Source: Macrostomum lignano (taxonomy: Eukaryota). Taken from it: DNA of 64,000 nt. How positions within the stretch are numbered: position 1 is the first letter of the stretch; each line of letters opens with the position of its first letter. The DNA is taken from positions 62,001 through 126,000 of the forward strand of contig NIVC01001346.1 of NCBI GenBank assembly GCA_002269645.1. Direction: 5' to 3'. Made by a program: the position numbers and the translations under genes. The notes below the pieces were generated by a model. The model made no database searches, was not told the origin of the DNA, and was given only the letters and a program-made list of their open reading frames with translations. Shown in pieces: positions 20,859 through 51,912 of this stretch.

Positions 20859-21071
20859 ATGCCAGCTGCCAGGTCCGGCGGCAGTAGGCCTATAGCGGAT
20901 TCGCGAGGCCACCTCCTGTCCGGGACGCCCAGATCGAAAAGGTCGCCTTGGGGTGACTTCAGCGGCGGCGCTTGGGCAAAAAAGGCGCCTGGGACGGATA
21001 GATGCTTCAAAACTGGGGAGGCCGACCAACGACTGCTGGCCACGGTGAACAGGTCCGGCCGGCGGAACTAA
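20859..21071 (+). CDS. CFAP126: Flattop/CFAP126 exon 3
   Basis: Acceptor ccaaag|ATG after an 87-nt intron. IADSRGHLLSGTPRSKRSPWGDF matches the Flattop core IANDRGHLLPSVPRSKANPWGSF as recalled. 98 aa if terminal. Confidence 0.9.
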   Translation: MPAARSGGSRPIADSRGHLLSGTPRSKRSPWGDFSGGAWAKKAPGTDRCFKTGEADQRLLATVNRSGRRN

Positions 21072-21482
21072 TTCCGGAAAACTGTGTATTAGCGTGAACA
21101 AACTGTTTTGATTACGAGCTCGTAAAATGAAATGAACAGACGTGAAATGACTACGATATATTGACCGTATATATGTGTATTGTAATAAGAAACAGCATGC
21201 AATGAACCGATTGGCATGACAAGAAATATTGCATGCAAGGAATATGTGTACCTTTTTCTATTTTATACAGTCTGAGCATATTAATGATGAGTACATAAGC
21301 ACTAAAAAAGTTATCAAATCGATGATGACAATTAAAAGAAACAATGTCGAGTGTGTCCCCAATCCATATGTATGATTTATATGACGATGTGCTGTCAAAC
21401 TTATTTTCAAACATTAGCTTATCATTAGTTAGGATTGAGCTTATTTGATTTAGAATTCGTTCATAACTTATTTAGCTGCTCA

Positions 21483-22020
21483 ATCTCTGACTCTAGATAT
21501 CCTATCTCTGACTCTAGATATCCTATCTCTGACTCTAGATATCCTATCTCTGACTCTAGATATCCTATCTCTGACTCTAGATATCCTATCTCTGGCTCTA
21601 GATATCCTATCTCTGACTCTAGATATCTTATCTCTGTGCCTAGATGTCCAATTTCTGGCTCTAGATATCCAATCTCTGTCTCTAGATAGCCAATCTCTGT
21701 CGCTAGATGCCCAATCTCTGTCGCTAGACACACGATCTCTGTCACTAGATTTCGAATCTCTGTCACTAGACATCCAATCCAATATCACTAGAAATCCAAT
21801 CTCTGTCCCTAGATACTCTGTCTCTGTCTCTATATTCCCAATCTCTGTCATTATATATCCAATCTGTTTCTAGATATCCAATATCTGTCTCTAGATGCCT
21901 AATCTCTGTCTCTAGATACCCAATCTCTGTCTCTAGACAGCCGATCTCTGTCACTAGATACACAATCTCTGTCACTAGATACACAATCTCTGTCTCTAGA
22001 TACCCAATCTCTGTCTCTAG
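21483..22020. repeat. 21-bp minisatellite (TCTCTGACTCTAGATATCCTA)n, degenerating rightwards
   Basis: Direct inspection. Confidence 0.9.
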
Positions 22021-22081
22021 GCGCACAATCACACGACAACCCAATAAACCCCACTATTGACGCCAGTCAGTCCGATTTCAG

Positions 22082-22408
22082 AAGACTTTTCAAGCAACGG
22101 CGGTCGCGGCCGCCGCCTCCGCCATCTCCATCGTCGGTCGCCGCCGTCAGTTGTTCGCGCAGGCGCTGATCCTTTCGTTGTCGCTGTCTTCTTCGACACT
22201 GTCGTCATCGGCGTCGGCCAAGAAGTCGTCGTCAGCTTCGTCGTGAGCATCAGCGGCGTTACCGCAGCGGGCGTCTTCTCCGCCTTTGGCGGCAGAAGCA
22301 ACAGACGGCAAGCCGAGACAAGCGTCAGCCACATCAGCGTGGCCACCGAAAACTTGGTGCACAATCGGCAGCGAAACCGTGGACGCCTGAAGTGCATGCC
22401 GCCGACAT
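22082..22408. other. Coding-like GC-rich island; strand and frame unresolved
   Basis: Plus frame open throughout, with acceptor atttcag|22082 and donor ACAT|gtgagg; two minus frames (acidic; Thr-rich with hydrophobic N-terminus) are also long. Confidence 0.45.
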
Positions 22409-22589
22409 GTGAGGTTCTGCGCACTCAGAACTTGGTCTTGTGTGGCATTCCCGCGTTTTTATGGCTAGAATTGTGTGCGCTCATCCGGCAACAGTCAGCT
22501 GCTGATTGGAACACGGGTTAAACTTTTCCGGAGTCTGCGGCTTCAAGTCCATCCATTTTATAGCTGGCTTTTTCCTACGCACTTTTGAT

Positions 22590-23105
22590 TAATACAATGA
22601 CCAGAATACAATGACCAGAATACTATGGACAGAATACTATGACCAGAATACTATGACCAGAATACAATGACCATCATACAATGACCAGAATACAATGACC
22701 AGAATACAATGACCAGCTTACAATTACTAGAATATAATTACCAGAGTTCAATGACCAGAGTACAATGACCAGCATACAATGACCAGCATACAATGACCAG
22801 AATACTATGATCAGAATACAATTACCAGAGTTTAATGGCCAGAGTACAATGACCACAATAACCAGAGTACAATGAACATAGTAAAATACATTACAATGAA
22901 CAGAGTACCATGACCAGAATACAATGACCACAATACAATGACCAGAGAACAATGAACAGAATACACGTACAATGACCAGAATACACGTACAATGACCAGA
23001 ATACAATTATCAGAACTCATTGACCAGAATACAAAGACCAGAATGTAGTGACCAGAATATAGTGACCAGAATGTAATGACCATAATATAATGACCAGATG
23101 ACCAG
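22590..23105. repeat. 14-bp minisatellite (ATGACCAGAATACA)n
   Basis: Direct inspection. Confidence 0.9.
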
Positions 23106-23185
23106 TTATTGTTCAGATTAGACTAGAATTTTCAAATGACCCCAAATGTTAGGAAAATTGCTCATAATTCTGCATCATGCCTCAG

Positions 23186-23261
23186 CCCAGTGGAACCTGA
23201 GCGCCCCATTGTCACAACAGTGCATGTCTCTAGAATAGACGGTTTTTCCTCGCCTCAATGG
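23186..23261 (+). CDS. Putative internal exon (PVEPERPIVTTVHVSRIDGFSSPQW)
   Basis: Tandem acceptors (exon start 23186 or 23191) and a strong donor TGG|gtaagc, phase 0. Confidence 0.4.
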
Positions 23262-23554
23262 GTAAGCCAACACGGCTTAAGTGAAGTGTTATCATCGATA
23301 ATTGATTAGTTTATATCTATAGGGTGCATTAAAGTGTAAGGAGTAAGGCGCACAAAAGCTTCAACAGTAACTAGCGGCTTGAGAGTCCCTCGATAATTGA
23401 CTGCCTTATAAATATTTTAGCACTAGTAGCGAACTTTTAACCTTATATGGAAGTTAGCATGCCTCAACTAAGATAAACAATTGCAGTATGGAAGTTTAAT
23501 TATTTCCCTGATTATTTCTAATGATAGCTAGAAACTTTCAATAGTCAGCGATAA

Positions 23555-26235
23555 TCTTCCAGTGGATAGCTAGATAAACTCTCAGGGGATAGCTTGATAA
23601 ACTCTCAGGGGATAGCTAGATAAACTCTCAGGGGATAGCTAGATAAACTCTCAGGGGATAGCTAGATAAACTATCAGGGGATAGCTAGATAAACTATCAG
23701 GGGATAGCTTGATAAACTCTCAGGGGATAGCTAGATAAGCTCTCAGGGGATAGCTTGATAAACTCTCAGGGGATAGCTAGATAAACTCTCAGGGGATAGC
23801 TAGATAAACTCTCAGGGGATAGCTAGATAAGCTCGCTGTGGATAGCTAGATAAACTCTCTGTGGATAGCTAGATAAACTCTCAGGGGATAGCTAGATAAA
23901 CTCTCAAGGGATAGCTAGATAAACTCTCAGGGGATAGCTAGATAAACTCTCAGGGGATAGCTAGATAAACTCTCAGGGGATAGCTAGATAAGCTCGCTGT
24001 GGATAGCTAGATAAACTCTCTGTGGATAGCTAGATAAACTCTCAGGGGATAGCTAGATAAACTCTCAAGGGATAGCTAGATAAACTCTCAGGGATAGCTA
24101 GATAAACTCTCAGGGGATAGCTAGATAAGCTCTCTGTGGATAGATAGACAAACTCTCTGTGGATAGCTAGATAAACTCTCAGGGGATAGCTTGATAAACT
24201 CTCAGGGGATAGCTAGATAAACTCTCTGTGGATAGCTACACAAACTTCCAATGGATAGCTACACAAACTTCCATTGGATAGCTACACAAAATTCCAATGG
24301 ATAGCTACACAAACTTCCATTGGATAGCTTCACAAACTTCCATTGGATAGCTACACAAACTTCCAATGGATAGCTAGATAAACTTTCAATGGATAGCTAC
24401 ACAAACTTCCAATTCATAGCTACAAAAAGTTCCATTGGATAGCTACACAAACTTCCATTGGATAGCTACACAAACTTCCAATGGATAGCTACATAAACTT
24501 CCAATGGATAGCTAGATAAACTTCCAATGGATAGCTAGATAAACTTTCAATGGATAGCTACACAAACTTCCAATGGATAGCTAGATAAACTTCCAATGGA
24601 TAGCTACACAAACTTCCAATGGATAGCTACATAAACTTCCAATGGATAGCTACACAAACTTCCAATTCATAGCTACAAAAAGTTCCATTGGATAGCTACA
24701 CAAACTTCCATTGGATAGCTACACAAACTTCCAATGGATAGCTACATAAACTTCCAATGGATAGCTTGATAAACTCTCAGGGGATAGCTAGATAAACTCT
24801 CAGGGGATAGCTAGATAAACTCTCAGGGGATAGCTAGATAAGCTCGCTGTGGATAGCTAGATAAACTCTCTGTGGATAGCTAGATAAACTCTCAGGGGAT
24901 AGCTAGATAAACTCTCAAGGGATAGCTAGATAAACTCTCAGGGGATAGCTAGATAAACTCTCAGGGGATAGCTAGATAAACTCTCAGGGGATAGCTAGAT
25001 AAGCTCGCTGTGGATAGCTAGATAAACTCTCTGTGGATAGCTAGATAAACTCTCAGGGGATAGCTAGATAAACTCTCAAGGGATAGCTAGATAAACTCTC
25101 AGGGGATAGCTAGATAAACTCTCAGGGGATAGCTAGATAAGCTCTCTGTGGATAGATAGACAAACTCTCTGTGGATAGCTAGATAAACTCTCAGGGGATA
25201 GCTTGATAAACTCTCAGGGGATAGCTAGATAAACTCTCTGTGGATAGCTACACAAACTTCCAATGGATAGCTACACAAACTTCCATTGGATAGCTACACA
25301 AAATTCCAATGGATAGCTACACAAACTTCCATTGGATAGCTTCACAAACTTCCATTGGATAGCTACACAAACTTCCAATGGATAGCTAGATAAACTTTCA
25401 ATGGATAGCTACACAAACTTCCAATTCATAGCTACAAAAAGTTCCATTGGATAGCTACACAAACTTCCATTGGATAGCTACACAAACTTCCAATGGATAG
25501 CTACATAAACTTCCAATGGATAGCTAGATAAACTTCCAATGGATAGCTAGATAAACTTTCAATGGATAGCTACACAAACTTCCAATGGATAGCTAGATAA
25601 ACTTCCAATGGATAGCTACACAAACTTCCAATGGATAGCTACATAAACTTCCAATGGATAGCTACACAAACTTCCAATTCATAGCTACAAAAAGTTCCAT
25701 TGGATAGCTACACAAACTTCCATTGGATAGCTACACAAACTTCCAATGGATAGCTACATAAACTTCCAATGGATAGCTAGATAAACTTCCAATGGATAGC
25801 TAGATAAACTTTCAATGGATAGCTACACAAACTTCCAATGGATAGCTAGATAAACTTCCAATGGATAGCTAGATAAACTTTCAATGGATAGCTACACAAA
25901 CTTCCAATGGATAGCTACACAAACTTCCAATGGATAGCTACACAAACTTCCAATGGATAGCTACACAAACTTCCAATGGATAGCTACACAAACTTCCAAT
26001 GGATAGCTACACAAACTTCCAATGGATAGCTACACAAACTTCCAATGGATAGCTAGATAAACTTCCAATGGATAGCTAGATAAACTTTCAATGGATAGCT
26101 ACACAAACTTCCAATGGATAGCTAGATAAACTTCCAATGGATAGCTAGATAAACTTTCAATGGATAGCTACACAAATTTCCAACGGATAGCTACACAAAC
26201 TTCCAATGGATAGCTACATAAACTTCCAACGGATA
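23555..26235. repeat. 23-bp satellite with two subfamilies and a 1012-bp higher-order duplication
   Basis: Units GGATAGCTAGATAAACTCTCAGG and GGATAGCTACACAAACTTCCAAT; variant aattcatagc recurs at 24411 and 25423. Confidence 0.95.
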
Positions 26236-26372
26236 GGAATCCAAATTTTCAACTCAACTTTGGACACACTAAACATTAAAATTAACTAAAAGCCTGTCTG
26301 TATCCCTAAACTTTGAATTTACGCTCTTAAAAAATTGAAGTTTCAATGGAATTTAATCTTTTGTTCTTACAG

Positions 26373-26435
26373 ATTAAAACTATGGAGGACATGGAGCACC
26401 CAGCTAACTCTCGCCATAACTATATTAATGACTGA
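26373..26435 (+). CDS. Putative terminal exon (IKTMEDMEHPANSRHNYIND*)
   Basis: Strong acceptor tttaatcttttgttcttacag|ATT; phase 0 matches the 23261 donor. Confidence 0.35.
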   Translation: MKTMEDMEHPANSRHNYIND

Positions 26436-26762
26436 CATGTTCGCAGGCTCACGCTCATCATCAAATAGTAATAGCCACTAACTTGAAGCAATGAGAAAGA
26501 AGCGAGATTTTTGAGACGAGCAACTCAAAAAACTACACGGCTAAGAGAGCTCATTTCTTCATCTAAAAAATAGTCTGCTTCTCAACATAGCCGCTAGCTT
26601 AATGCGGTAGACAGAGAGAAAGTTAAGATTTGTGCACACAATGGAGAGGGAGCGGGGGAGAAGTTTAACAGACGTCAAACAACATGTCTGTTGGTTTAGA
26701 AAAGCCGGCTTGATAGAATCAGGAAAAGCAGCAGCACACAGACGCGCACACGCATACGAGCC

Positions 26763-26795
26763 TATATAGAAATGCTCAGGCAGACAGGTGCAGTG
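26763..26795 (+). promoter_or_regulatory. Candidate TATA box plus initiator for the 26821 gene
   Basis: TATATAGA at 26763 and an Inr-like GCAGT about 29 bp downstream, about 30 nt before the ATG. Confidence 0.35.
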
Positions 26796-26820
26796 AGAAC
26801 AAGCCGGTGAGGCGAGCAGA

Positions 26821-27539
26821 ATGGATTACCAGATTCCTCAGCACTACTATGCAGCACAGCTACAGCAGCAGCAGCAGCCGCAGGTGGTCCTAGTCCAGGC
26901 TCCAGACGGCGCCGCATCAGTCAGCGGCCCTGCGGCCAGCTCGCTGGACAAGTACCATTTCTACAACGATCCCGTGATCAGCCGGTGGCGCCAGAGAGCC
27001 AGCGGGTCGGCAGCTTCATCGCCCGCCGGGACGCCGAGGAAGCAGCAACAGCAGCAGCAGCGGCAGCAGCCTCAGCAGCAGCCCCGGCAGCAGCCGGTGT
27101 CGATTCTCAAACAGCCTGGCGGCCCGAAGTCTGTCCGGTTCAGCCTGGACGAAGGACAGCCGATTGAAGCCGGGCCGAGCCAGCTGGCGCCGCGGCTCAA
27201 TCGGCGACAGACTCGAGACGCTATCAGCGCGGAGGAGGTGGCCGCGGCCGCGGTCGCCTATCAGCGAGGCCAGGCGCAGCAATCCACCTTCGTGATTGAC
27301 GACGACCCGGCTTCTTCTGTAGAGCCACCTGTTCAGCGTCAGCCGCCAACTTCGCCTCCGGAAATCATTGTCCAGGACGAGAATGAGGCCGTGTTCTACA
27401 AGGAGTTCGGCGGCGTCGGCGGAGGCCGCGATCTCCGACCAGCGCCAACTCCAAGACGGCCGCGCCAGAGCGCACCCAAGGAGCGGGGCCGGTTCGAGGC
27501 GGTGGCCGACGATTCGGATGAAGATCGGGAAGCTGATAG
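26821..27539 (+). CDS. Gln/Pro-rich disordered protein with SILK and RVxF motifs, exon 1
   Basis: ORF 26821..27543, GC-rich; contains VSILKQPGGPKSVRFSLDE; donor GATAG|gtgatt (phase 2) just before the in-frame stop. Confidence 0.8.
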
Positions 27540-27628
27540 GTGATTATTGAGCACCACTGTGCTGATTTTTAGCTTGTGAAATTTTTAGCACCTGAGCAAA
27601 GAATAATTGGACAATTTTCTCTTCTCAG

Positions 27629-27713
27629 GTACCACAGTGGCAGCCCGCGCAAGAGCAACGGGCGCGAGGAGGCTTCAAAGACTGGCAGTTCGAGGGCTTG
27701 CACGATACTGTGA
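27629..27713 (+). CDS. Exon 2 of the same gene, ending in CaaX (RYHSGSPRKSNGREEASKTGSSRACTIL*)
   Basis: Acceptor ttttctcttctcag|G after an 89-nt intron, phase 2; gives a 267-aa protein ending CTIL. Confidence 0.75.
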
Positions 27714-27719
27714 CTGGCC

Positions 27720-28350
27720 CTGACACAAGCTGTCACAAGCTGACACAAGCTGATGCAAGCTGACACAATCTGACACAAGCTGACACAAACTGAAACAAGC
27801 TGACACAAGCTGACTTAAGCTGATACAAGCTGACATAATCTGACACAATCTGACACAAGCTGACACAAACTGACACAAACTGACACAAGTTAAACAAACT
27901 AATACACAATCTCACAAAAGTTATACAATCTGGCACAAATGACACTAAAAACATAAGCTGACAAAATCTGACAATCGGAACAAAAAATGACACAAATGAT
28001 GCATCTGATACTAGATGACAAAATTCACAAGCTGAAACAAGCTGACTTAAGCTGATACAAACTGACACAATTAAACTGACACAATTTGACAAAATCTGAC
28101 AAAATCTGACACAATCTGATACAAACTGACACAATCTGATACTAACTGACACAAACTGAAACAAGCTGACACAATCTTGACACAGGCTGACACAATTGTC
28201 CCAATTACTGACACAAAGGGCACAATATGACACAAATTTCACGATTCCCCCTGTCATAACTGACACAACTCATGACACAATCTAACACAAAATACACTTA
28301 AATTTGACTTAAGCTGACACAAATGATACAAATGAGACAAGCCTATACAA
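27720..28350. repeat. 10-bp repeat (CTGACACAAG/A)n starting a few bases after the CaaX gene stop
   Basis: Direct inspection. Confidence 0.9.
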
Positions 28351-28682
28351 ATCATATAACCAGCAATATTCTGTAACAAAAAATCTATCATTTTACAGTA
28401 GATTACCTGACCAGTAGAAGCACATGATATTTTTTATTTACCTCTTGCTTCCATAATGTACAGATTTTATTATCCGTTTGCCGTCTAAAATATAAGTTCA
28501 AATACGGCTAACTTTTGAACGCGTATCTTTGCTTGTCTACTTGTCAGTAGCGATGCCAGCTTTTTACTGCTAAATGCTTCTGGAAATACAATATTTATTT
28601 GCGTACTTTACACTTTTCACTTTCAATGAAACATTAGTCTAAGAGTATAATTTATCTGGCTATTCAACTTTTTATCTGGCTA

Positions 28683-29155
<473 letters not shown>

Positions 29156-29498
29156 TCACAGCATCTTTCTATCTCTCCATACCCCTATCTCAGGCAGCTC
29201 TTCTTTACTTATGGCAGCTCAGAGTGGGGTGAAATCGAGTTTACAATGGACAGCAGAGCAAAACGCAGAGTAGGGCTCCGAAATGTGCAAGTACTGTTTT
29301 CTGTCACCCAGCTGCATTGAGCTGTACTGGCAGTGGACTGTCTGTTCTTACCCTCTTTATATACACAAAAACCCAGCACTTAGCTGTGCTCATAATGTCA
29401 TGCACCTTTTGCTATTAATATAAGTAGCGTTTTCTATGAAGATTTCAAAAGTAGGCCCGAGATGCGCTGCCTGTGTCTGCTTTTGTGAAGCATCATAG

Positions 29499-29684
29499 GC
29501 GGCCCAGCATGGACTTCTACAAGCCGGAATTTTCCAGCGCAGAGTTGGCGGCCAGCCTGACTCGCCATCTGCTGCTTGGCGACAGTCCGGCAAGTTCGAG
29601 CGATTGCTATGCCGTTGCTATGGTGTCCGCGGCGCTACCTGTGGCTGAGTTTGAGGCTGCTGAGTATCCTGCAGCCGCTGAGTG
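29499..29684 (+). CDS. Putative exon (MDFYKPEFSSAELAASLTRHLLLG...AAAEW), possibly a 5' exon of the FAM217-like gene
   Basis: catag| acceptor, ATG at 29509 in good context, donor GAGTG|gtgagg; only one plus frame spans it. Confidence 0.3.
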
Positions 29685-29721
29685 GTGAGGGTTCTTGGTG
29701 ATTTGTTCCTGAAGCTATGGG

Positions 29722-30325
29722 CTGGGATTTAGTAGCTATGAGCTGGCATTTAGTAGCTGTGAGCTGGGATTTAGTAGCTATGGGCTGGCATTTAGTAGCT
29801 ATGAGCTGGCATTTAGTAGCTATGAGCTGGAATTTAGTAGCTATGAGCTGGCATTTTTAGCTATGAGCTGGCATTTAGTAGTAATGAGCTGGCATTTAGT
29901 AGCTATGAGCTGGCTTTGAGTAGCTATGAGCTGGCTTTGAGTAGCTATGAGCTGGCTTTGAGTAGCTATGAGCTGGCATTTAGTAGCTATGAGCTGGCAT
30001 TTAGTAGTAATGAGCTGGCTTTGAGTAGCTATGAGCTGGCTTTGAGTAGCTATGAGCTGGCTTTGAGTAGCTATGAGCTGGCTTTGAGTAGCTATGAGCT
30101 GGCTTTGAGTAGCTATGAGCTAGCTTTGAGTAGCTATGAGCTGGCATTTAGTAGTTATGAGCTGGCATTTAGTAGCTATGAGCTGGCTTTGAGTAGCTAT
30201 GAGCTGGCTTTGAGTAGCTATGAGCTGGCATTTAGTAGCTATGAGCTGGCATTTAGTAGCTATGAGCTGGCTTTGAGTAGCTATGAGCTGGCTTTGAGTA
30301 GCTATGAGCTGGAATTTAATAGCTA
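29722..30325. repeat. 21-bp minisatellite (TTTAGTAGCTATGAGCTGGCA)n
   Basis: Direct inspection. Confidence 0.95.
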
Positions 30326-30909
30326 TTACTCCCATGAGCTGGGATTTACTAGCTCTTTACTATTTGCTATTTGCTGCATACTACTGATTGAGTAGTTAAA
30401 TAGTTTTAATACGTTTTAATTACTCCAGATCAAAAGTTTTCTAAAAATATTTATTTAATACGCCTAAAAGTTCAAGTAACAATCGATCAAATCAAAACGT
30501 CAAAAGAGGGCCTATGCTGTAATAACTTTTCAAAACTTTAGAGCAGTATACTCAAAAGTTGCATTAAGCAAAGTACCAATCAATACGTTCCTCAGTTTGA
30601 ATCGATTGTTGACTCCAAACTCGGCAAACTCTTAGAAGCCTCAGTTGCAGATGCATTTAAATACATATTTAAATATTTTGCAGCTTTGGGTTGGCAGGAG
30701 GCAATTCTGTTGAAGTGGCCAAAAGTGAAGTGTAAAACTGAAGCAATAGCTACCTAGCTACTATAGAGATAGTCTGGGTCTGTGCCCAGCCATGGACTTC
30801 TAGACATAGCACCTGTGGACTGGAAACTTGAATAAAACAACCTCCCCATTTGGAGGCCAATAGACAGCTCATATTGTATTTTGAATTTTTTGCCTGGGAT
30901 GCAACACTA

Positions 30910-31152
30910 TTTACACAAGCGTTACATCCAATTTACACTAAGCATTACATCATATTTACACTAAGCATTACATCCAATTTACACTAAGCATTACATCCAA
31001 TTTACACTAAGCATTACATCCTATTTACACTAAGCATTACATACAATTTACACTAAGCATTACATCCAATTTACACTAAGCATTACATCCTATTTACGCT
31101 AAGCATTACATCCAATTTACACTAAGCATTACATCCAATTTACGCTAAGCAT
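30910..31152. repeat. 23-bp minisatellite (ATTTACACTAAGCATTACATCCA)n
   Basis: Direct inspection. Confidence 0.95.
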
Positions 31153-32322
31153 CTTAAGAAACTCCTAAATAACGTTAAAACGGTAAAACAAATCGGAACA
31201 ATCAAAGACCTATTTCGAAGTCTATTCAAATTTAAGGAAGACTAAGGACCCAAAACTAAAACCTTCAAGGTGCTTGTTTTGATCCCTTTTTACCGTTTTC
31301 AAGTAATTTGATTTCGCTAAGGCGCTACCAAAGTTGAGGCCGTGCCTTATTCCGGCTTCCAGTCCACCGGGTGCTATTTCTAGAAGTCCCTGTGACCCAG
31401 CCCCGCGATCAGTCCTGCCCGGGTCGATGAGCGCTTCAGTGTCGAGAGCGAAAGAAGGGCAGACAGCACGAGAAGGGCTTTGAGAGGCCATGCGGGAGTG
31501 CGCTTCCCTCCTCTCTGAACTTCCGCCACACTGCTTCACAATGCAAGCAGTTTGGGATTTCTGACTGCGCCACTGGAGACAGAGGCTGGGGATCTTTTTG
31601 GAGACGAGACAGAAGTTGAGAGACCTTGGATGGCATGGAAGAGCAGGGGGCAGCTTCTTAGGCCAAGCCCAAGCTCCATAGCAACGCCTTGACGATGGCG
31701 GATTGCGCTACATGCCAAGAATCTGATCCACCAAAAGAAAGCACTAAACTAGTAAAAAGGGTAAACATTTTTACTGTAGCGAATTGAATTCTAAGTTCAA
31801 GTTTAAGTTGTAATTTTTCAAGTGGGTAAACGGCAAGAGTAACTATACGTTTATTTTGAGAAATTAATGCATCGTCATCTAATTAGTACTTTAACTAATA
31901 AGAACCCTTGAATTTTAATAACCACACAATGACCGGCGCCCAAAGCTTCTGTTGAAACTTTGTTTGCCTCCTCCTCATCATTACTGTGTCATCAAAGCCT
32001 GAGCGGGTCGGGTGCATCCCAAGGCACCTGGCGGTAATTATGCTAAAATAGGCGGCATTAAAAACTGAGTGAGAGTCGCATCGGCGCTTTAGGAAATGAG
32101 GGCCTCTGACATAGCGGCCTGAGCCTCAGTCTGCATACGCAGAGTAGAATAGAGGAGGAATTCTATAGCTGCCCACCTCCCATGGGAAAGGTAAATGACG
32201 CCAGTTCACAATGGGAGCCAATGGCAGTCCAAAACCCGCCGGGCTCTGTGTGCTAATAAGCAAACCAAGCCACACTGGGAGCCGTTGGGAGGCGCAAGAA
32301 GGGCTTAGCTCGAGATCTCGGG

Positions 32323-32948
32323 ATGCTGGGCTCCATCTTCTGTCGCATCCCCGTGCCCGCCCCGGCGGCGCCAGCGGAAACCGCGTCGTCGAAAACGACG
32401 ACAATTTCGACGGCTCGGCCGCCTCCTCCGCCGAAAATGAGGCAGCGCCGCCGCCGCCCGGAGGCCTCGGTGGCGGCCGCCAGAGTGGAGGAGCTGCTGC
32501 TGTACAGACTGAGCCGCTGCCTTCAATGCAGGTCCTCCGTGCTGCAGGAGCGCGACCTGCTGGCCGAAGCGGCACCTGACGATGAGGACGACGACCGGGC
32601 CGACGAAGCGGAGACCGAGGCCACGCCGCGCCGACTGCAGCGCCGGCCACCGAGGCCGCCGTCGTCATCGTCTGTCAGCCGGCCAGTCGGCCTGTACGGC
32701 TCAGCGAGGGTGCCGGACGTCCGGTTGAGCGGCGACCCGGTAACAGCCTATCGGGAGTCGTTGCGCATCAGCCTGCGCGCCTTCCGGCGCCGCCAATGGC
32801 GTCCTCTGGACGTTGAAGCGCTCGAGGCGGCGCGCGATCCCGAAGACATCAACAGGCGCAGCTGCCGGCTCGGCAGGGGCGGCGGCGACGGTGGCTACTC
32901 GCGGCCGGTGTCAGCTGCCGGTTCAGCCGCGAGATTCCCGGCGCCATC
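32323..32948 (+). CDS. FAM217-like gene, first resolved coding exon (5' boundary uncertain)
   Basis: ORF 32323..32952 ends at a strong donor CCATC|gtgagt (phase 2). Confidence 0.65.
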
Positions 32949-33157
32949 GTGAGTGTCGCCCGGCGGTTAACGCCTTTGACTCCCGAGCCAGAGTAGCCGG
33001 AGTTCGAGTTCGCGCCCATGAGGGCCACTCCTGAAGAAAGCCAGGGCCACTGTACACCCTGCATGAGGATGCAGGCATAGTGGGGCAAATTTATGTCAAT
33101 AATATAGTACATTACAATCTTATAATTTTTATCTTGCGCCAAAAAAAGTCGTCGCAG

Positions 33158-33692
33158 ACCCAAGTCGGTTCCGGCCGAGGCGCTCAAAAGTCGAGCAGCG
33201 TCGAAGGCGGCCGCGGAGGAGGCGGCGGCAGCAGCGGCAAAAGATCCGGAAGATCCTCCACCACCAAGGCCGCTGCGCTTGGAAGACTGCGCGCCCGCCT
33301 TCACGCCGCGGTTCTACGACTGGCAGAGCGGCGGCAATGACGACGGGGACAACGCGACGGCGACGACGGCCAACGGCGTCAGCAGCAGCGACGGCGATGA
33401 CAGCGACGCCGCGGACGACAATGACGTCGACAATGAGGAGAAATCGTCGCCAAAACGCACCACCGCCGCTGCCGCCGCCGCTACCGCCGCCGCTGCCGAT
33501 TCCGGTGCCGATGCCCACCGGCAGCGACGTCGCCGATTTCGGGCGCCGGATTTGAACCTGCCGCCGGAGCGGGAGCCGCAGTTCCTGCTGGCCAGCAGCT
33601 GCTTGGAGCCGGATAAATTTGAATTCTCCGCGAAACTGGTTCTGGATTTGCCGAGATTCGAGTTCGGGACAGCGTTGCCCGATCCGTTTTCG
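33158..33692 (+). CDS. FAM217-like gene exon (...LEDCAPAFTPRFYDW...PDLNLPPE...ALPDPFS)
   Basis: Acceptor gtcgcag|A (phase 2), donor TCG|gtgagc (phase 0); in frame with ORF 33279..33707. Confidence 0.8.
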
Positions 33693-33719
33693 GTGAGCCG
33701 TGTCTGAAGGTCACAACCC

Positions 33720-35100
33720 CCATTCCACATCCCTCATCCCCCACCACCACCCTGTCCCTCATAATCCAGCATCTCAAATTTAACACTCTTAAATCCAACA
33801 TCCCACATTCCTCTCATACAGCTTCCCACATCCGATATCCGGCATCCCGAATCACGCATCTCACATCCCTGAGTGAGCATTTGATATTTAACATCCTAAA
33901 TCCCCCATCCCTCATAACTCATCCACCATTCTTCATCCCTCATCATCCATCCTTCATCCCCCATCGTTTAATCCCCCATCCCCCATCCCCCATCCTTCAT
34001 CTCCCATCCTTCATCCCTATCCTTCATCCCCAATCCTTCATCTTCCATCCTTCATCCCCCATCCTTCATCTCCCATCCTTCATCCCCCATCCTTCATCCC
34101 CCACCCTTCATCTCTCATCCTTCATCCCCAATCCTTCATCTTCCATCCTTCATCCCCCATCCTTCATCCCCAATCCTTCACCTTCCATCCTTCATCCCCA
34201 TCCTTTATCCCCCATCCTTCATCTTCCATCCTTCATCCTCATCCTTCATCCCCATCCTTCATCTTCCATCTTTCATCCCCATCCTTCATCCCCATCCTTC
34301 ATCTTTCATCTTTCATCCCCATCCTTCATCCCCAATCCTTCATCCCCCATCCTTCATCCCCATCCATCATCCCCCATCCTTCATCCCCAATCCATCATCT
34401 TCCATCCTTCATCCCCCATCCTTCATCTTCCATCTTTCATCCCTATCCTTCATCCCCCATCCTTCATCCCCAATCCTTCACCTTCCATCCTTCATCCCCG
34501 TCCTTCATCCCCATCCTTCATCCCCAATCCTTCATCTTCCATCCTTTATCCCCCATCCTTCATCCCCCATCCTTCATCCCCCATCCTTCATCCCCAATCC
34601 TCATCCCCCATCCTTCATCCCCATCCTTCATCCCCATCCTTCATCCCCATCCTTCATCTTCCATCCTTTATCCCCCATCCTTCATCTCCCATCCTTCATC
34701 CCCAATCCTTCATCTCCCATCCTTCATCCCCATCCTTCATCCCCAATCCTTCGCCTTCCGTCCTTCATCCCCCATCCTTCATCCCCCATCCTTCATCCCC
34801 AATCCTTCATCCCCATCCTTCATCCCCCATCCTTCATCCCCATCCTTCATCCCCCATCCTTCATCCCCAATCCTTCATCCCCCATCCTTCATCCCCATCC
34901 TTCATCCCCATCCTTCATCCCCCATCCTTCATCCCCAATCCTTCATCCCCAATCCTTCACCTTCCATCCTTCATCTCTCACCCCCCTTTCCTCATCCTCA
35001 TCCCCCTTCCCATATCCCCCATCTCATCCCCCAACCCACTTCCCACATTCTCCATCTCATATTGAATATATCGCACATTATATCCCCATCCCACATCCCC
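33720..35100. repeat. Degenerate (CATCCC/CATCCTT)n low-complexity array filling an intron
   Basis: Direct inspection. Confidence 0.9.
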
Positions 35101-35134
35101 AAATCTCTATTCTCCCCTCGAAAACAATTCCCAG

Positions 35135-35419
35135 AACGCTTCGTTTCGCTCGCTGGCCGAGTGCGAAAACGGCTGGCGCAGCGTCTTCCCCGAGGCCCTG
35201 GCCGAGTCCGAGCCGGGACTGGCCGGCCTCATGGACCGCCTGATCGCCATGGAGCGGCTGCAGCTGCACACCGTCCGGATGGAGGCGGCCCGCTTTGGCG
35301 CAGCTGGCAGTGCGGCATTGGCGACTAGGCGAGCAACGTCGGCGTCAGTCGCGGGTTCGAGTCCCGCTACAGGCGGCGGCCGATTAAGAAGTCAAAACTG
35401 CTGCCGGGGCTGCCTTCAG
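35135..35419 (+). CDS. FAM217-like gene exon (NASFRSLA...GLAGLMDRLIAMERLQLHTVRME...NCCRGCLQ)
   Basis: Acceptor ttcccag|AAC, donor CAG|gttggc, both phase 0, 285 nt; resembles the FAM217 core IDRLxxLEWLQxxTVxxE as recalled. Confidence 0.8.
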
Positions 35420-36580: not shown

Positions 36581-36810
36581 AAGGTTTCCCATGGCTTATG
36601 AATAGAAAAGGCCACCATTCTTCTTGCCTAGAAGTGCTTACCTCTAAACAATGGGGGTGCCGCTACGTAATAAATCGAGGTATCTAAAACCTTAAGCACA
36701 CCGGCTAGAATGAATTGATAAATCGACCAATTCAAATTAGTTTATTTGCCAATTCAAAAGTTTCCTAGCCTAACCATATTACAATGCAATAATTAATATT
36801 GTGCTCAAAG

Positions 36811-37398
36811 GTGGGCTGCTCTGGCGACTGTCCGCTGAAGCGAGCGCCCAACAAGATCTGCCTGCACTGTCGGCAGCCAATGTGCCTTGACGGGGCTTGC
36901 CTTCGCCGGACGTACAACGATCGGGCTCGGGAGGCTCCAGACTCTCAGCTGCATCAGCCGCAGCAACAGCAGCCGCAGCGCAAGAATTCTCAAGTGTTGC
37001 TACCGTCGAAGTTTTGCAAACCCTGCGAAGTGACCAGCCGGCCCCCGGTGGTGTCGCGCCAGCGTCAGCAAGGCGGAAATGTCGGCGTCGGCTTATTGTC
37101 CAGACCGCGCTCGCAACTGCCTACTTATTCTAGTAGTGCGCAAAGTAAACGGCCGAAATCTGTTGAAATTCGTCAACAGCGCCAGCAGCGACAGAGGCAG
37201 CCGGCCGGGAGGCAGCCGACTTCGGTGAACTTTTCAGAGCAGCTGCGAGACGCTTCGGTTATCGATGTCACCAGGGAGCAGAACCGGTTCAAAGCTTACA
37301 CCGGCGTCGGCCGGAACACGCTGATTCCTGGAAAGACCCGAGTGTCAATGAGGCGACACTCGCTAACTGCCAACAGGAGGGTCTGGTCGGCTGTTTGA
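36811..37398 (+). CDS. FAM217-like gene terminal exon (VGCSGDCP...CLHCRQPMCLDGAC...)
   Basis: Acceptor ctcaaag|GTG (phase 0). Four exons total 2034 nt = 677 aa plus stop. Confidence 0.8.
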   Translation: MGCSGDCPLKRAPNKICLHCRQPMCLDGACLRRTYNDRAREAPDSQLHQPQQQQPQRKNSQVLLPSKFCKPCEVTSRPPVVSRQRQQGGNVGVGLLSRPRSQLPTYSSSAQSKRPKSVEIRQQRQQRQRQPAGRQPTSVNFSEQLRDASVIDVTREQNRFKAYTGVGRNTLIPGKTRVSMRRHSLTANRRVWSAV

Positions 37399-50718: not shown

Positions 50719-50858
50719 GTTGCAGTTAGTCTAAAAGGTGCTTTATTACTCAAAAAATGCATTAAGCACTTTTACGCAACTGCTCGAGGGTTTCTGCTTT
50801 CACGCATTAGCAGTGGCTATATTGGCACGCCAGCATACAGGATTCGCGCACTGCTCAC

Positions 50859-51912
50859 CAGTCGAATCCAGCACTTTGTTCTCCGAGGACATGAACTGTT
50901 CGCACATTGTTGTTTTGCCAACTCGCGGTGCGCCCATCACCTGCACTCTGTAGGACTGGCACGGACTGCAGGACGGCAGGGTGTACAGGATGGGCACCGC
51001 GCTCACCGGCGGAGCGGCCGCGCCGCCCTCAGCCGCGCAGCCGCAGTTGCCGACGCTGCCGGCTCCGCCAGAGGCCGCCGAGCTGCTGCGCCGCCTGTCC
51101 TGCTGCTGGAGCTGCTGGTGCAGTCGAGAGTCGGAGCCCCCTGACCCGATGGCTACCGCTGGCACCTCCATGAAGGCCGTCTGCGGCTGCTGCTGAGGCT
51201 GCTGAGCCGGCCGGAGTTCCAGCTCGCTGCCTCCGGCGGAGCTGTTATTCAAGCTGCAGTTGCTGCGAGCTTTGCGCACCTCGTCGCCCTGGTTCACCAG
51301 GCCGTGCTTCGTCCGTTTGAAGCTGCGCACCCTGACCAGCTGCTCCCGCGGCTCCGGCAGCTCCAGAGTTTCACCTTCGCGCGGGCCGCCCATCCGCTCC
51401 TTGACGCTGCCATGCAGCCGCCGGCCGGACATGCTGTTGGCTCGGGGCCTGTCAGATTCCTCGGCTGGTGCCTCTGCGGTTGAAGCCGCCGCCGCTGCTG
51501 CCGCAGCTGATGAAGTGGCGAATGCGTTGGCCGCTACCGAAGCTGTGGACTCGGGAAACGCCGAACGCCTCCTGTTGTGCCTGCAGGAAGCCGAGCGGTT
51601 GTGCCTGCAGAGTTGCTGCTGAGGCTGCTGTAGCTGTAGCTGCTGCTTCCTGTCTGCCGCCGTCGGGGCCGCTTCAGCCGATGCCGCCGATGCCGTGGCC
51701 TGCTGCAAGTCCTGGACCCACTCGCCCACTCGCTCTTCCGCGGCCGGTCTTAATCCTCCGGTAGCGGCGGCGGCAGCGGCGGGGCGATTGGCCAGGCGCC
51801 AATACAAATCAAACTCGTCGTCGCCGTGACCTCGGCCGGCCAACAGCAGCTGGCCGCGGCTCTCGGCGTGTACAGTAGCCCGCCTGGCCCCGCTGCGCCG
51901 GGGAGAGGCCAT
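50859..51912 (-). CDS. Rgk: RGK-family GTPase exon 1 (long N-terminal extension and G1 P-loop)
   Basis: ATG at 51912; contains VRVRSFKRTKHGLVNQGD (invertebrate RGK N-terminal motif as recalled) and YRVQVMGAPRVGKTT; donor ACTG|gtgagc (phase 1). Four exons total 1617 nt = 538 aa plus stop. Confidence 0.9.

Follow-up and report, generated by a model that had tools for sequence, protein, structure and literature searches.

The described proteins that most closely resemble the locus analysed here are PPP1R16A and PPP1R16B (MYPT3 and TIMAP), in which an RVxF-type motif that binds the catalytic subunit (PP1c) of protein phosphatase 1 (PP1) is joined to a C-terminal CaaX box that places the holoenzyme on membranes; both contain five ankyrin repeats and are farnesylated (PMC3560227). 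The locus in question is a candidate two-exon gene on the forward strand (positions 26821-27713) of a 64-kb stretch of contig NIVC01001346.1 from the flatworm Macrostomum lignano, hereafter the window, and its predicted 267-residue product carries a SILK motif, an RVxF-type motif and, at what may be its C-terminus, a CaaX-like box. Unlike PPP1R16A/B, the candidate possesses no repeat or domain, its box is of the CaaL (geranylgeranyl) type, it has an additional SILK motif, and it shares no sequence similarity with them. The product may be a disordered, short-linear-motif partner of PP1c, a reading that we hold tentatively, at somewhat less than even chances.

The docking half of this arrangement is reminiscent of Inhibitor-3 (PPP1R11) and Inhibitor-2 (PPP1R2), which are likewise small, intrinsically disordered proteins with SILK and RVxF motifs, joined in Inhibitor-3 by a short unstructured linker (PMC10066265). 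However, the candidate has no CCC motif (it contains a single cysteine) and no inhibitory helix, its linker is two residues shorter than that of Inhibitor-3, and neither inhibitor carries a lipid anchor. A canonical SILK motif N-terminal to RVxF in an unstructured segment is similarly present in CSRNP1-3 and in the N-terminus of KNL1, and the CSRNP linker is short enough for use in the engineered PhosTAP peptide, in which a short CSRNP3-derived linker connects SILK and RVxF (PMC11536154). Yet neither carries a CaaX box or resembles the candidate beyond the motifs; the CSRNPs act in the nucleus as Cys/Ser-rich transcription factors, and KNL1 is a giant scaffold of the kinetochore. Recruitment of PP1 to membranes by a prenylated partner is also described for the SHOC2-MRAS-PP1C holophosphatase (PMC6613145). 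There, however, a folded GTPase bears the lipid and a leucine-rich repeat (LRR) scaffold holds PP1, whereas in the candidate one disordered chain would serve both purposes. No described small protein combining SILK, RVxF and CaaX was found in the literature.

The candidate gene and its signals comprise the following features, in window coordinates:

26763..26768, + strand: TATATA, a possible TATA box 53 nt 5' of the ATG, as read from the sequence
26821..27539, + strand: coding exon 1, holding codons 1-239 and 2 nt of codon 240, and including a Q-rich low-complexity stretch
27100..27111, + strand: SILK motif, S94 I95 L96 K97
27127..27141, + strand: RVxF-type motif KSVRF, K103-F107
27202..27213, + strand: RRQT, residues 128-131
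27540..27628, + strand: 89-nt phase-2 intron, GTGATT...CTCTTCTCAG, with GT..AG borders
27629..27713, + strand: coding exon 2, which completes codon 240, adds 27 codons and ends in a TGA stop at 27711-27713
27699..27710, + strand: CTIL, C264-T-I-L267, a CaaX box of the geranylgeranyltransferase type I (CaaL) kind if C-terminal

The layout of exon, intron and exon is supported by base composition and codon periodicity. The G+C content shifts precisely where the boundaries were placed, being 0.41 upstream, 0.65 in exon 1, 0.36 in the intron, 0.62 in exon 2 and 0.38 downstream, and its distribution over the three codon positions follows the same pattern in exon 1 (0.75/0.49/0.72) as in exon 2 (0.75/0.44/0.67). 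The remaining five frames of exon 1 are interrupted by 4-11 stops. The start ATG at 26821, with an A at -3 and a G at +4, follows an in-frame TGA that lies 18 nt further 5'. On these grounds the locus is very probably a real gene, most likely a two-exon gene restricted to Macrostomum. A further ATG lies upstream, at 26772; a transcription start some 30 nt past the TATATA would leave it out of the mRNA.

Without splicing, the open reading frame (ORF) at 26821-27543 encodes 240 residues and closes with a TGA at 27541-27543, which is itself part of the GTGA of the intron donor (TAG/GTGATT, at 27540). The acceptor reads TTTTCTCTTCTCAG/G, with its last nucleotide at 27628. Six AG acceptors could be used by this donor, half of which lead to the CTIL tail and the other half to a tail of 2-3 residues, and the acceptor at 27628 is the only one of the six with a long pyrimidine tract. 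The spliced product has 267 residues, of which exon 2 contributes RYHSGSPRKSNGREEASKTGSSRACTIL, and terminates in ...SSRACTIL. The 240-residue ORF, the 89-nt phase-2 intron and the tail ending in RACTIL were all put forward in the initial annotation of this DNA and are present in the sequence exactly as described; the intron gains additional backing from G+C content and codon periodicity, and the only public gene model of the region uses the same junction. The intron is thus probably spliced as proposed. Two other origins of the open frame were considered and rejected. A minus-strand gene is not supported, the ORFs there reaching at most 88 residues, and the surrounding minisatellites did not produce the ORF, as their tandem arrays stop outside the exons except for the CAG/polyglutamine (polyQ) run, the only repetitive part. 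No second copy of the candidate gene was found inside the window.

Both docking motifs are canonical. The SILK sequence fits [GS]IL[RK], and KSVRF fits the loose definition [RK]x0-1[VI]{P}[FW] as well as the strict one, [HKR][ACHKMNQRSTV]V[CHKNQRST][FW]. SILK lies N-terminal to KSVRF, from which it is separated by the flexible five-residue linker QPGGP ahead of K103, and KSVRF is followed directly by the acidic segment SLDE; an acidic C-terminal flank is typical of functional RVxF sites (PMC3792071). A SILK motif within 30 residues N-terminal of a strict RVxF motif arose once in 200,000 shuffles of the candidate protein and ten times among 200,000 random sequences of 267 residues with generic composition (3 of 200,000 when the gap was limited to 10 residues), which corresponds to a chance rate of 5e-6 to 5e-5 per protein of this size. 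The earlier observation that SILK stands just N-terminal to an RVxF-type motif is therefore confirmed, with both motifs canonical and their pairing rarely produced by chance, and the motif grammar had been read correctly; its setting is disordered and Pro/Gly-flanked.

One further short sequence lies near the docking site. In Inhibitor-1 and DARPP-32 (PPP1R1), an Arg-preceded threonine that is a protein kinase A (PKA) site lies 23 residues past the F of KIQF, and its phosphorylation makes the protein an inhibitor. RRQT is the only RRx[ST] sequence, the PKA-type consensus, in the candidate, and T131 lies 24 residues past F107. The likeness is a lead only and the significance of the site is speculative, resting as it does on analogy: Inhibitor-1/DARPP-32 is a vertebrate family without SILK or CaaX, and the candidate has no Pfam DARPP-32 match.

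The protein is probably intrinsically disordered. Disorder-promoting residues make up 70% of it, and its hydropathy of 0.386 falls below the Uversky boundary of 0.416. The model that AlphaFold2 built from the single sequence has a mean confidence (predicted local distance difference test, pLDDT) of 51 and a predicted template modelling score (pTM) of 0.13 and is devoid of secondary structure, which by itself is weak evidence. Together, these predictions indicate that SILK and RVxF lie in an accessible, disordered region flanked by Pro and Gly.

In a Pfam scan, neither the 267-residue protein nor its C-terminal 176 residues matched any family at E <= 10, apart from sub-threshold chance matches; in particular, there was no match to IPP-2, PPI_Ypi1, CSRNP_N, DARPP-32, PP1c_bdg (PPP1R15), ankyrin repeats or FAM217 (PF15344). 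Membership in the MYPT3/TIMAP, Inhibitor-2, Inhibitor-3, CSRNP, PPP1R15 and DARPP-32 groups was rejected, as profile matches and the defining features of these groups are absent. The protein is not a MYPT3/TIMAP-type subunit, because it possesses no ankyrin repeat or other Pfam domain.

An exhaustive HMMER search of 1.84 billion representative proteins returned exactly one match, UniRef100_A0A1I8IWD8 (E = 1.3e-130, 94% identity), a 901-residue gene model of the same species, the free-living flatworm M. lignano. Word-index searches for homologues of the full protein, of its non-polyQ C-terminal 176 residues and of the FAM217-like region that lies downstream gave no match. As this method missed A0A1I8IWD8, which is present in the collection searched, its empty results are weak evidence for such eukaryotic queries. 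A metagenome contig scan with the candidate protein gave no match, a look-up of contigs found none encoding the 240-residue ORF or A0A1I8IWD8, and a sequence search of the PDB gave only a chance beta-lactamase match (E = 1.6) and no PP1 regulator. Exact look-ups of seven isoforms (spliced, unspliced and five with alternative acceptors) among 15 billion proteins found none on record. The 267-residue protein is, in the databases searched, an orphan.

From PRQQPVSILK to CTIL, a stretch of 178 residues, the candidate and A0A1I8IWD8 are identical, SILK and KSVRF included. The FAM217-like exons farther downstream show 5 differences in about 270 residues, and the upstream non-coding sequence is only 55-80% identical. 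The identity over 178 residues hints at constraint, but as evidence it is weak because A0A1I8IWD8 derives from the error-prone ML2 assembly, in which 31.9% of bases are error-free (PMC5730564). In the N-terminal half (26986-27095, residues 56-92), residues 56-73 of the model are read in the +1 frame, and 13 additional residues (LGSYVVTPTGELV) immediately precede PRQQPVSILK. These differences may be either an error of the ML2 assembly or the mark of a genuine second copy whose N-terminal half is relaxed.

At the other end of the protein, the cysteine of CTIL (C264) is the only one present and lies exactly at position -4, with an aliphatic residue at a2 and Leu at X. A CaaL terminus arises by chance with a frequency of 6e-5 to 1e-3 in simulations with shuffled or random proteins. 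A CaaL box directs geranylgeranylation. A second membrane signal, such as a polybasic stretch or a palmitoylatable cysteine, is not required for prenylation itself.

The mechanism that these features suggest can be set out in a few steps. KSVRF (residues 103-107) would dock in the RVxF groove of PP1c, and SILK (residues 94-97) would assist by occupying the adjacent SILK pocket. Provided that translation ends at the TGA at 27711, CTIL would receive a geranylgeranyl group, by which the bound phosphatase would be held on endomembranes or the plasma membrane. As there is no substrate-binding domain, the protein would be expected not to specify substrates but to serve as a tether, a competitor or an inhibitor.

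Several findings count against a prenylated PP1 partner, some of them bearing on docking and others on the 3' end of the gene. Those on docking speak for the strongest of the alternatives, namely a real gene for an orphan disordered protein whose SILK, RVxF and CaaX-like strings are coincidental and serve no PP1-related function. For the approximately 44,000 non-redundant genes of M. lignano (PMC5730564), about 1-3 SILK-RVxF pairs would be expected by chance per proteome, and the reading that first singled out this one covered many windows. Because such chance pairs are about as numerous as the handful of genuine SILK+RVxF regulators per species, the pair is a good lead and not proof. Approximately 25% of proteins contain RVxF-like strings (PMC4794898), and non-functional strings are documented in LAP1B and Scribble, where canonical SILK does not mediate PP1 binding (PMC3792071; PMC8569552). 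Among the 1.84 billion proteins searched there is no orthologue outside M. lignano by which motif conservation could be judged, the one relative being from the same species, and no accessory PP1 motif (ΦΦ, MyPhoNE, RARA or Fxx[RK]x[RK]) was found in the 267-residue protein.

The spacing of the two motifs is also unusual, although the compact arrangement of SILK, linker and RVxF as such is supported by precedents in Inhibitor-3 and in the CSRNP-derived linker of PhosTAP. In the crystal structure of Inhibitor-3 with PP1, 28-LTIK-31 occupies the SILK pocket and 40-KVEW-43 the RVxF pocket, with a mobile linker between them (PMC10066265). This is the shortest linker in a crystal structure, and it places 10 residues between K31 and V41, as opposed to 8 between K97 and V105 of the candidate. 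The spacing is thus two residues shorter than any validated one, and the two motifs may or may not fill both pockets at once. Conversely, coincidence would have to account for three independent signals in the correct order in one small protein, for the only cysteine being placed exactly at -4, for the accessible, disordered and Pro/Gly-flanked setting of the motifs, and for the invariance between the two copies of the C-terminal 178 residues that hold all three signals. Coincidence is accordingly a serious explanation, albeit one that we consider on the unlikely side, and PP1 binding by the product, given that it is a real protein, has close to an even chance.

The findings on the 3' end concern the gene model A0A1I8IWD8, which would make the two exons an internal or 5' part of a longer gene. 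The model has no start Met and maps colinearly to 20888-35416 on the + strand, with 98-100% identity per exon over 26902-35416. From an internal AG near 26863 onwards it follows the candidate exon, uses the 89-nt intron, and then, rather than stopping at the TGA at 27711, splices over it from 27710 to 29194, continuing into the FAM217-like region at 32.3-35.4 kb; its exons past 27710 are 29194-29269, 29455-29684, 32292-32949, ~33520-33692 and 35135-35416. Three features are relevant here:

27710..27715, + strand: alternative donor GTGACT, overlapping the stop codon, from which A0A1I8IWD8 splices to 29194
27720..28195, strand not applicable: minisatellite of 48 copies of CTGACACAAG, beginning 7 nt past the stop; 3' untranslated region or intergenic sequence, or intron
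29194..29269, + strand: bridging exon of the long model, with an ATG at 29246; alternatively, exon 1 of the gene that follows

Under this longer gene, CTIL would not be prenylated, because it would be internal. PP1 docking could still hold, but the reading as a small prenylated subunit would then be wrong. The colinearity of the model and its high identity per exon speak for the longer gene, and in the window, too, all its junctions preserve the frame. A GTGA coincides with the TGA at 27711, which is the case at any phase-2 GTGA donor; the accepted first intron likewise shows an in-frame TGA directly after such a donor. The donor of that first intron, at 27540, itself reads GTGAT and not the majority form GT[GA]AG, which accounts for 65% of M. 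lignano donors (PMC8629364). No canonical AATAAA poly(A) signal occurs in 27714-29193, where there is a single ATTAAA at 28070. Furthermore, a genuine FAM217-like gene makes up the downstream part: the exons at 33.5-35.4 kb match FAM217 (PF15344) with 31.1 bits (E = 2.8e-7) in the translation of the window and 27.2 bits in A0A1I8IWD8, against a cut-off of 27.

On the other hand, the connecting signals are poor. The donor ACT/GTGACT at 27710 is weak, lacking G at both -1 and +5; a pyrimidine tract is missing at the acceptor at 32292, and the coding signature of the bridging exon is weak (G+C content 0.47; 0.54/0.40/0.48 by codon position). The model is also a fragment without a start Met, and its first 160 residues cannot be translated from the window, where they map at 55-80% identity with frame hops and an in-frame stop; the assembly from which it derives is, as noted above, error-prone. 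Its UniRef name, 'ULP_PROTEASE domain-containing', finds no Pfam support. Spliced-leader trans-spliced and polycistronic units are numerous in M. lignano, and the operon spacers are rich in repeats (PMC5730564; PMC8629364). Gene models of this genome are known to suffer from the fusing of adjacent trans-spliced genes. The spacer that follows the candidate gene measures 1.48 kb, about two-thirds of which is minisatellite. A0A1I8IWD8 is therefore probably chimeric, fusing two or three genes. Given this chimeric look and the trans-spliced polycistronic units of M. lignano, a stand-alone 267-residue gene is moderately favoured over the fused model, and a longer gene that absorbs the two exons appears unlikely.

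On the strength of the signals, the true C-terminus leans towards CTIL, and, once terminal, CTIL would with good confidence be prenylated. The last 30 residues contain 6 K/R and 3 D/E, with no polybasic stretch and no further cysteine, which adds to the points against a membrane anchor.

Finally, the possibility that no functional gene is present, the open frame being an accident of a GC-rich island between minisatellites that was taken up by an ab initio predictor, draws on the recovery of a 240-codon open frame in 27 of 2000 shuffles (1.35%) of the GC-rich segment of exon 1, on the many long spurious repeat-derived ORFs of the window, on the lack of a homologue beyond M. lignano and of the exact product among 15 billion recorded proteins, and on the frameshifted stretch and 13-residue insertion in the N-terminal half of the second copy, but it is very improbable in the face of a strong codon-position periodicity shared by exons 1 and 2, between which lies an AT-rich intron whose splice signals are good, of a non-repetitive sequence not made of the surrounding minisatellites, and of a C-terminal 178 residues identical between copies whose non-coding flanks have diverged.

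The reading that best withstands these comparisons is thus a disordered partner of PP1. Its individual links, from expression and splicing through the true 3' end, PP1 binding and prenylation to a biological role, are ones that we infer from sequence, and the full chain, a prenylated PP1 regulator with a lipid anchor, is improbable as a whole. The membrane-anchoring PP1 regulator proposed in the initial annotation stands as far as its motifs and its lack of MYPT3/TIMAP-type repeats are concerned, the absence of ankyrin repeats having been borne out by the Pfam scan; the CaaX box is present as CTIL but is C-terminal in only one of the two gene models, and the anchor would apply under that model alone. 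The accompanying suggestion of intron retention as a switch of localisation is pure conjecture. In its most elaborate form the proposal would be a minimal, domain-less PP1 regulator and a macrostomid-specific invention, coupling compact SILK-x5-KSVRF docking to a geranylgeranyl tether, and switched by phosphorylation of RRQT131 and by intron retention that removes the anchor; this version is quite unlikely to hold in full.

The surroundings of the gene are highly repetitive. More than half of the M. lignano genome consists of repeats, simple and tandem repeats account for 15% of it, and large blocks are duplicated (PMC5730564). The window is packed with minisatellites, whose arrays yield non-gene ORFs of 150-460 residues in several frames. 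Around the candidate gene, further arrays include a 23-mer in 97 copies, (CTAT)119 and a 21-mer in 29 copies, over spans that include 24000-26236, 28680-29155 and 29713-30326.

Downstream on the + strand, the FAM217-like gene occupies 32323-35416 and beyond, with exons at ~32323-32949, ~33520-33692 and 35135 to at least 35416. What FAM217 proteins do is unknown, and the literature yielded no link between this family and PP1. Between it and the candidate lies a possible small ORF (29246-29688, + strand) of two exons and about 85 residues, MDSRAKRR followed by ARDALPVSAFVKHHRRPSMDFYKPEF...AAAEW. It has no Pfam match, its TGA shares nucleotides with a strong donor (GTGAGG at 29685), and it could be either a gene in its own right or the 5' end of the FAM217-like gene. 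Farther away, a 199-residue ORF at 36799-37398 (+ strand) has a Cys-rich N-terminus (MCSKVGCSGDCPLKRAPNKICLHCRQPMCLDGACL) and no significant Pfam match. A 370-residue ORF at 50800-51912 (- strand) is rich in Q, A and S and ends in the P-loop GAPRVGKTT; its only Pfam matches, to Roc and AAA, are below threshold, and it probably belongs to a small-GTPase-like gene, as the first of its coding exons. Rfam and tRNA scans of the whole window gave no matches.

As a practical point, users of the public M. lignano gene models should note that A0A1I8IWD8 probably fuses two or three genes. With respect to PP1 itself, the candidate, if confirmed, would be a variant within the regulators based on short linear motifs and not a new principle, and the conceptual gain would be modest, because such partners of PP1 number in the hundreds and include known prenylated ones. 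Nevertheless, if the reading is true, it would mean that a lipidated disordered peptide alone suffices to target PP1 to membranes, without the ankyrin scaffold of TIMAP and MYPT3 or the LRR scaffold of SHOC2-MRAS, and it would provide an example of a de novo or fast-evolving PP1 regulator in a regeneration model that is open to transgenesis.

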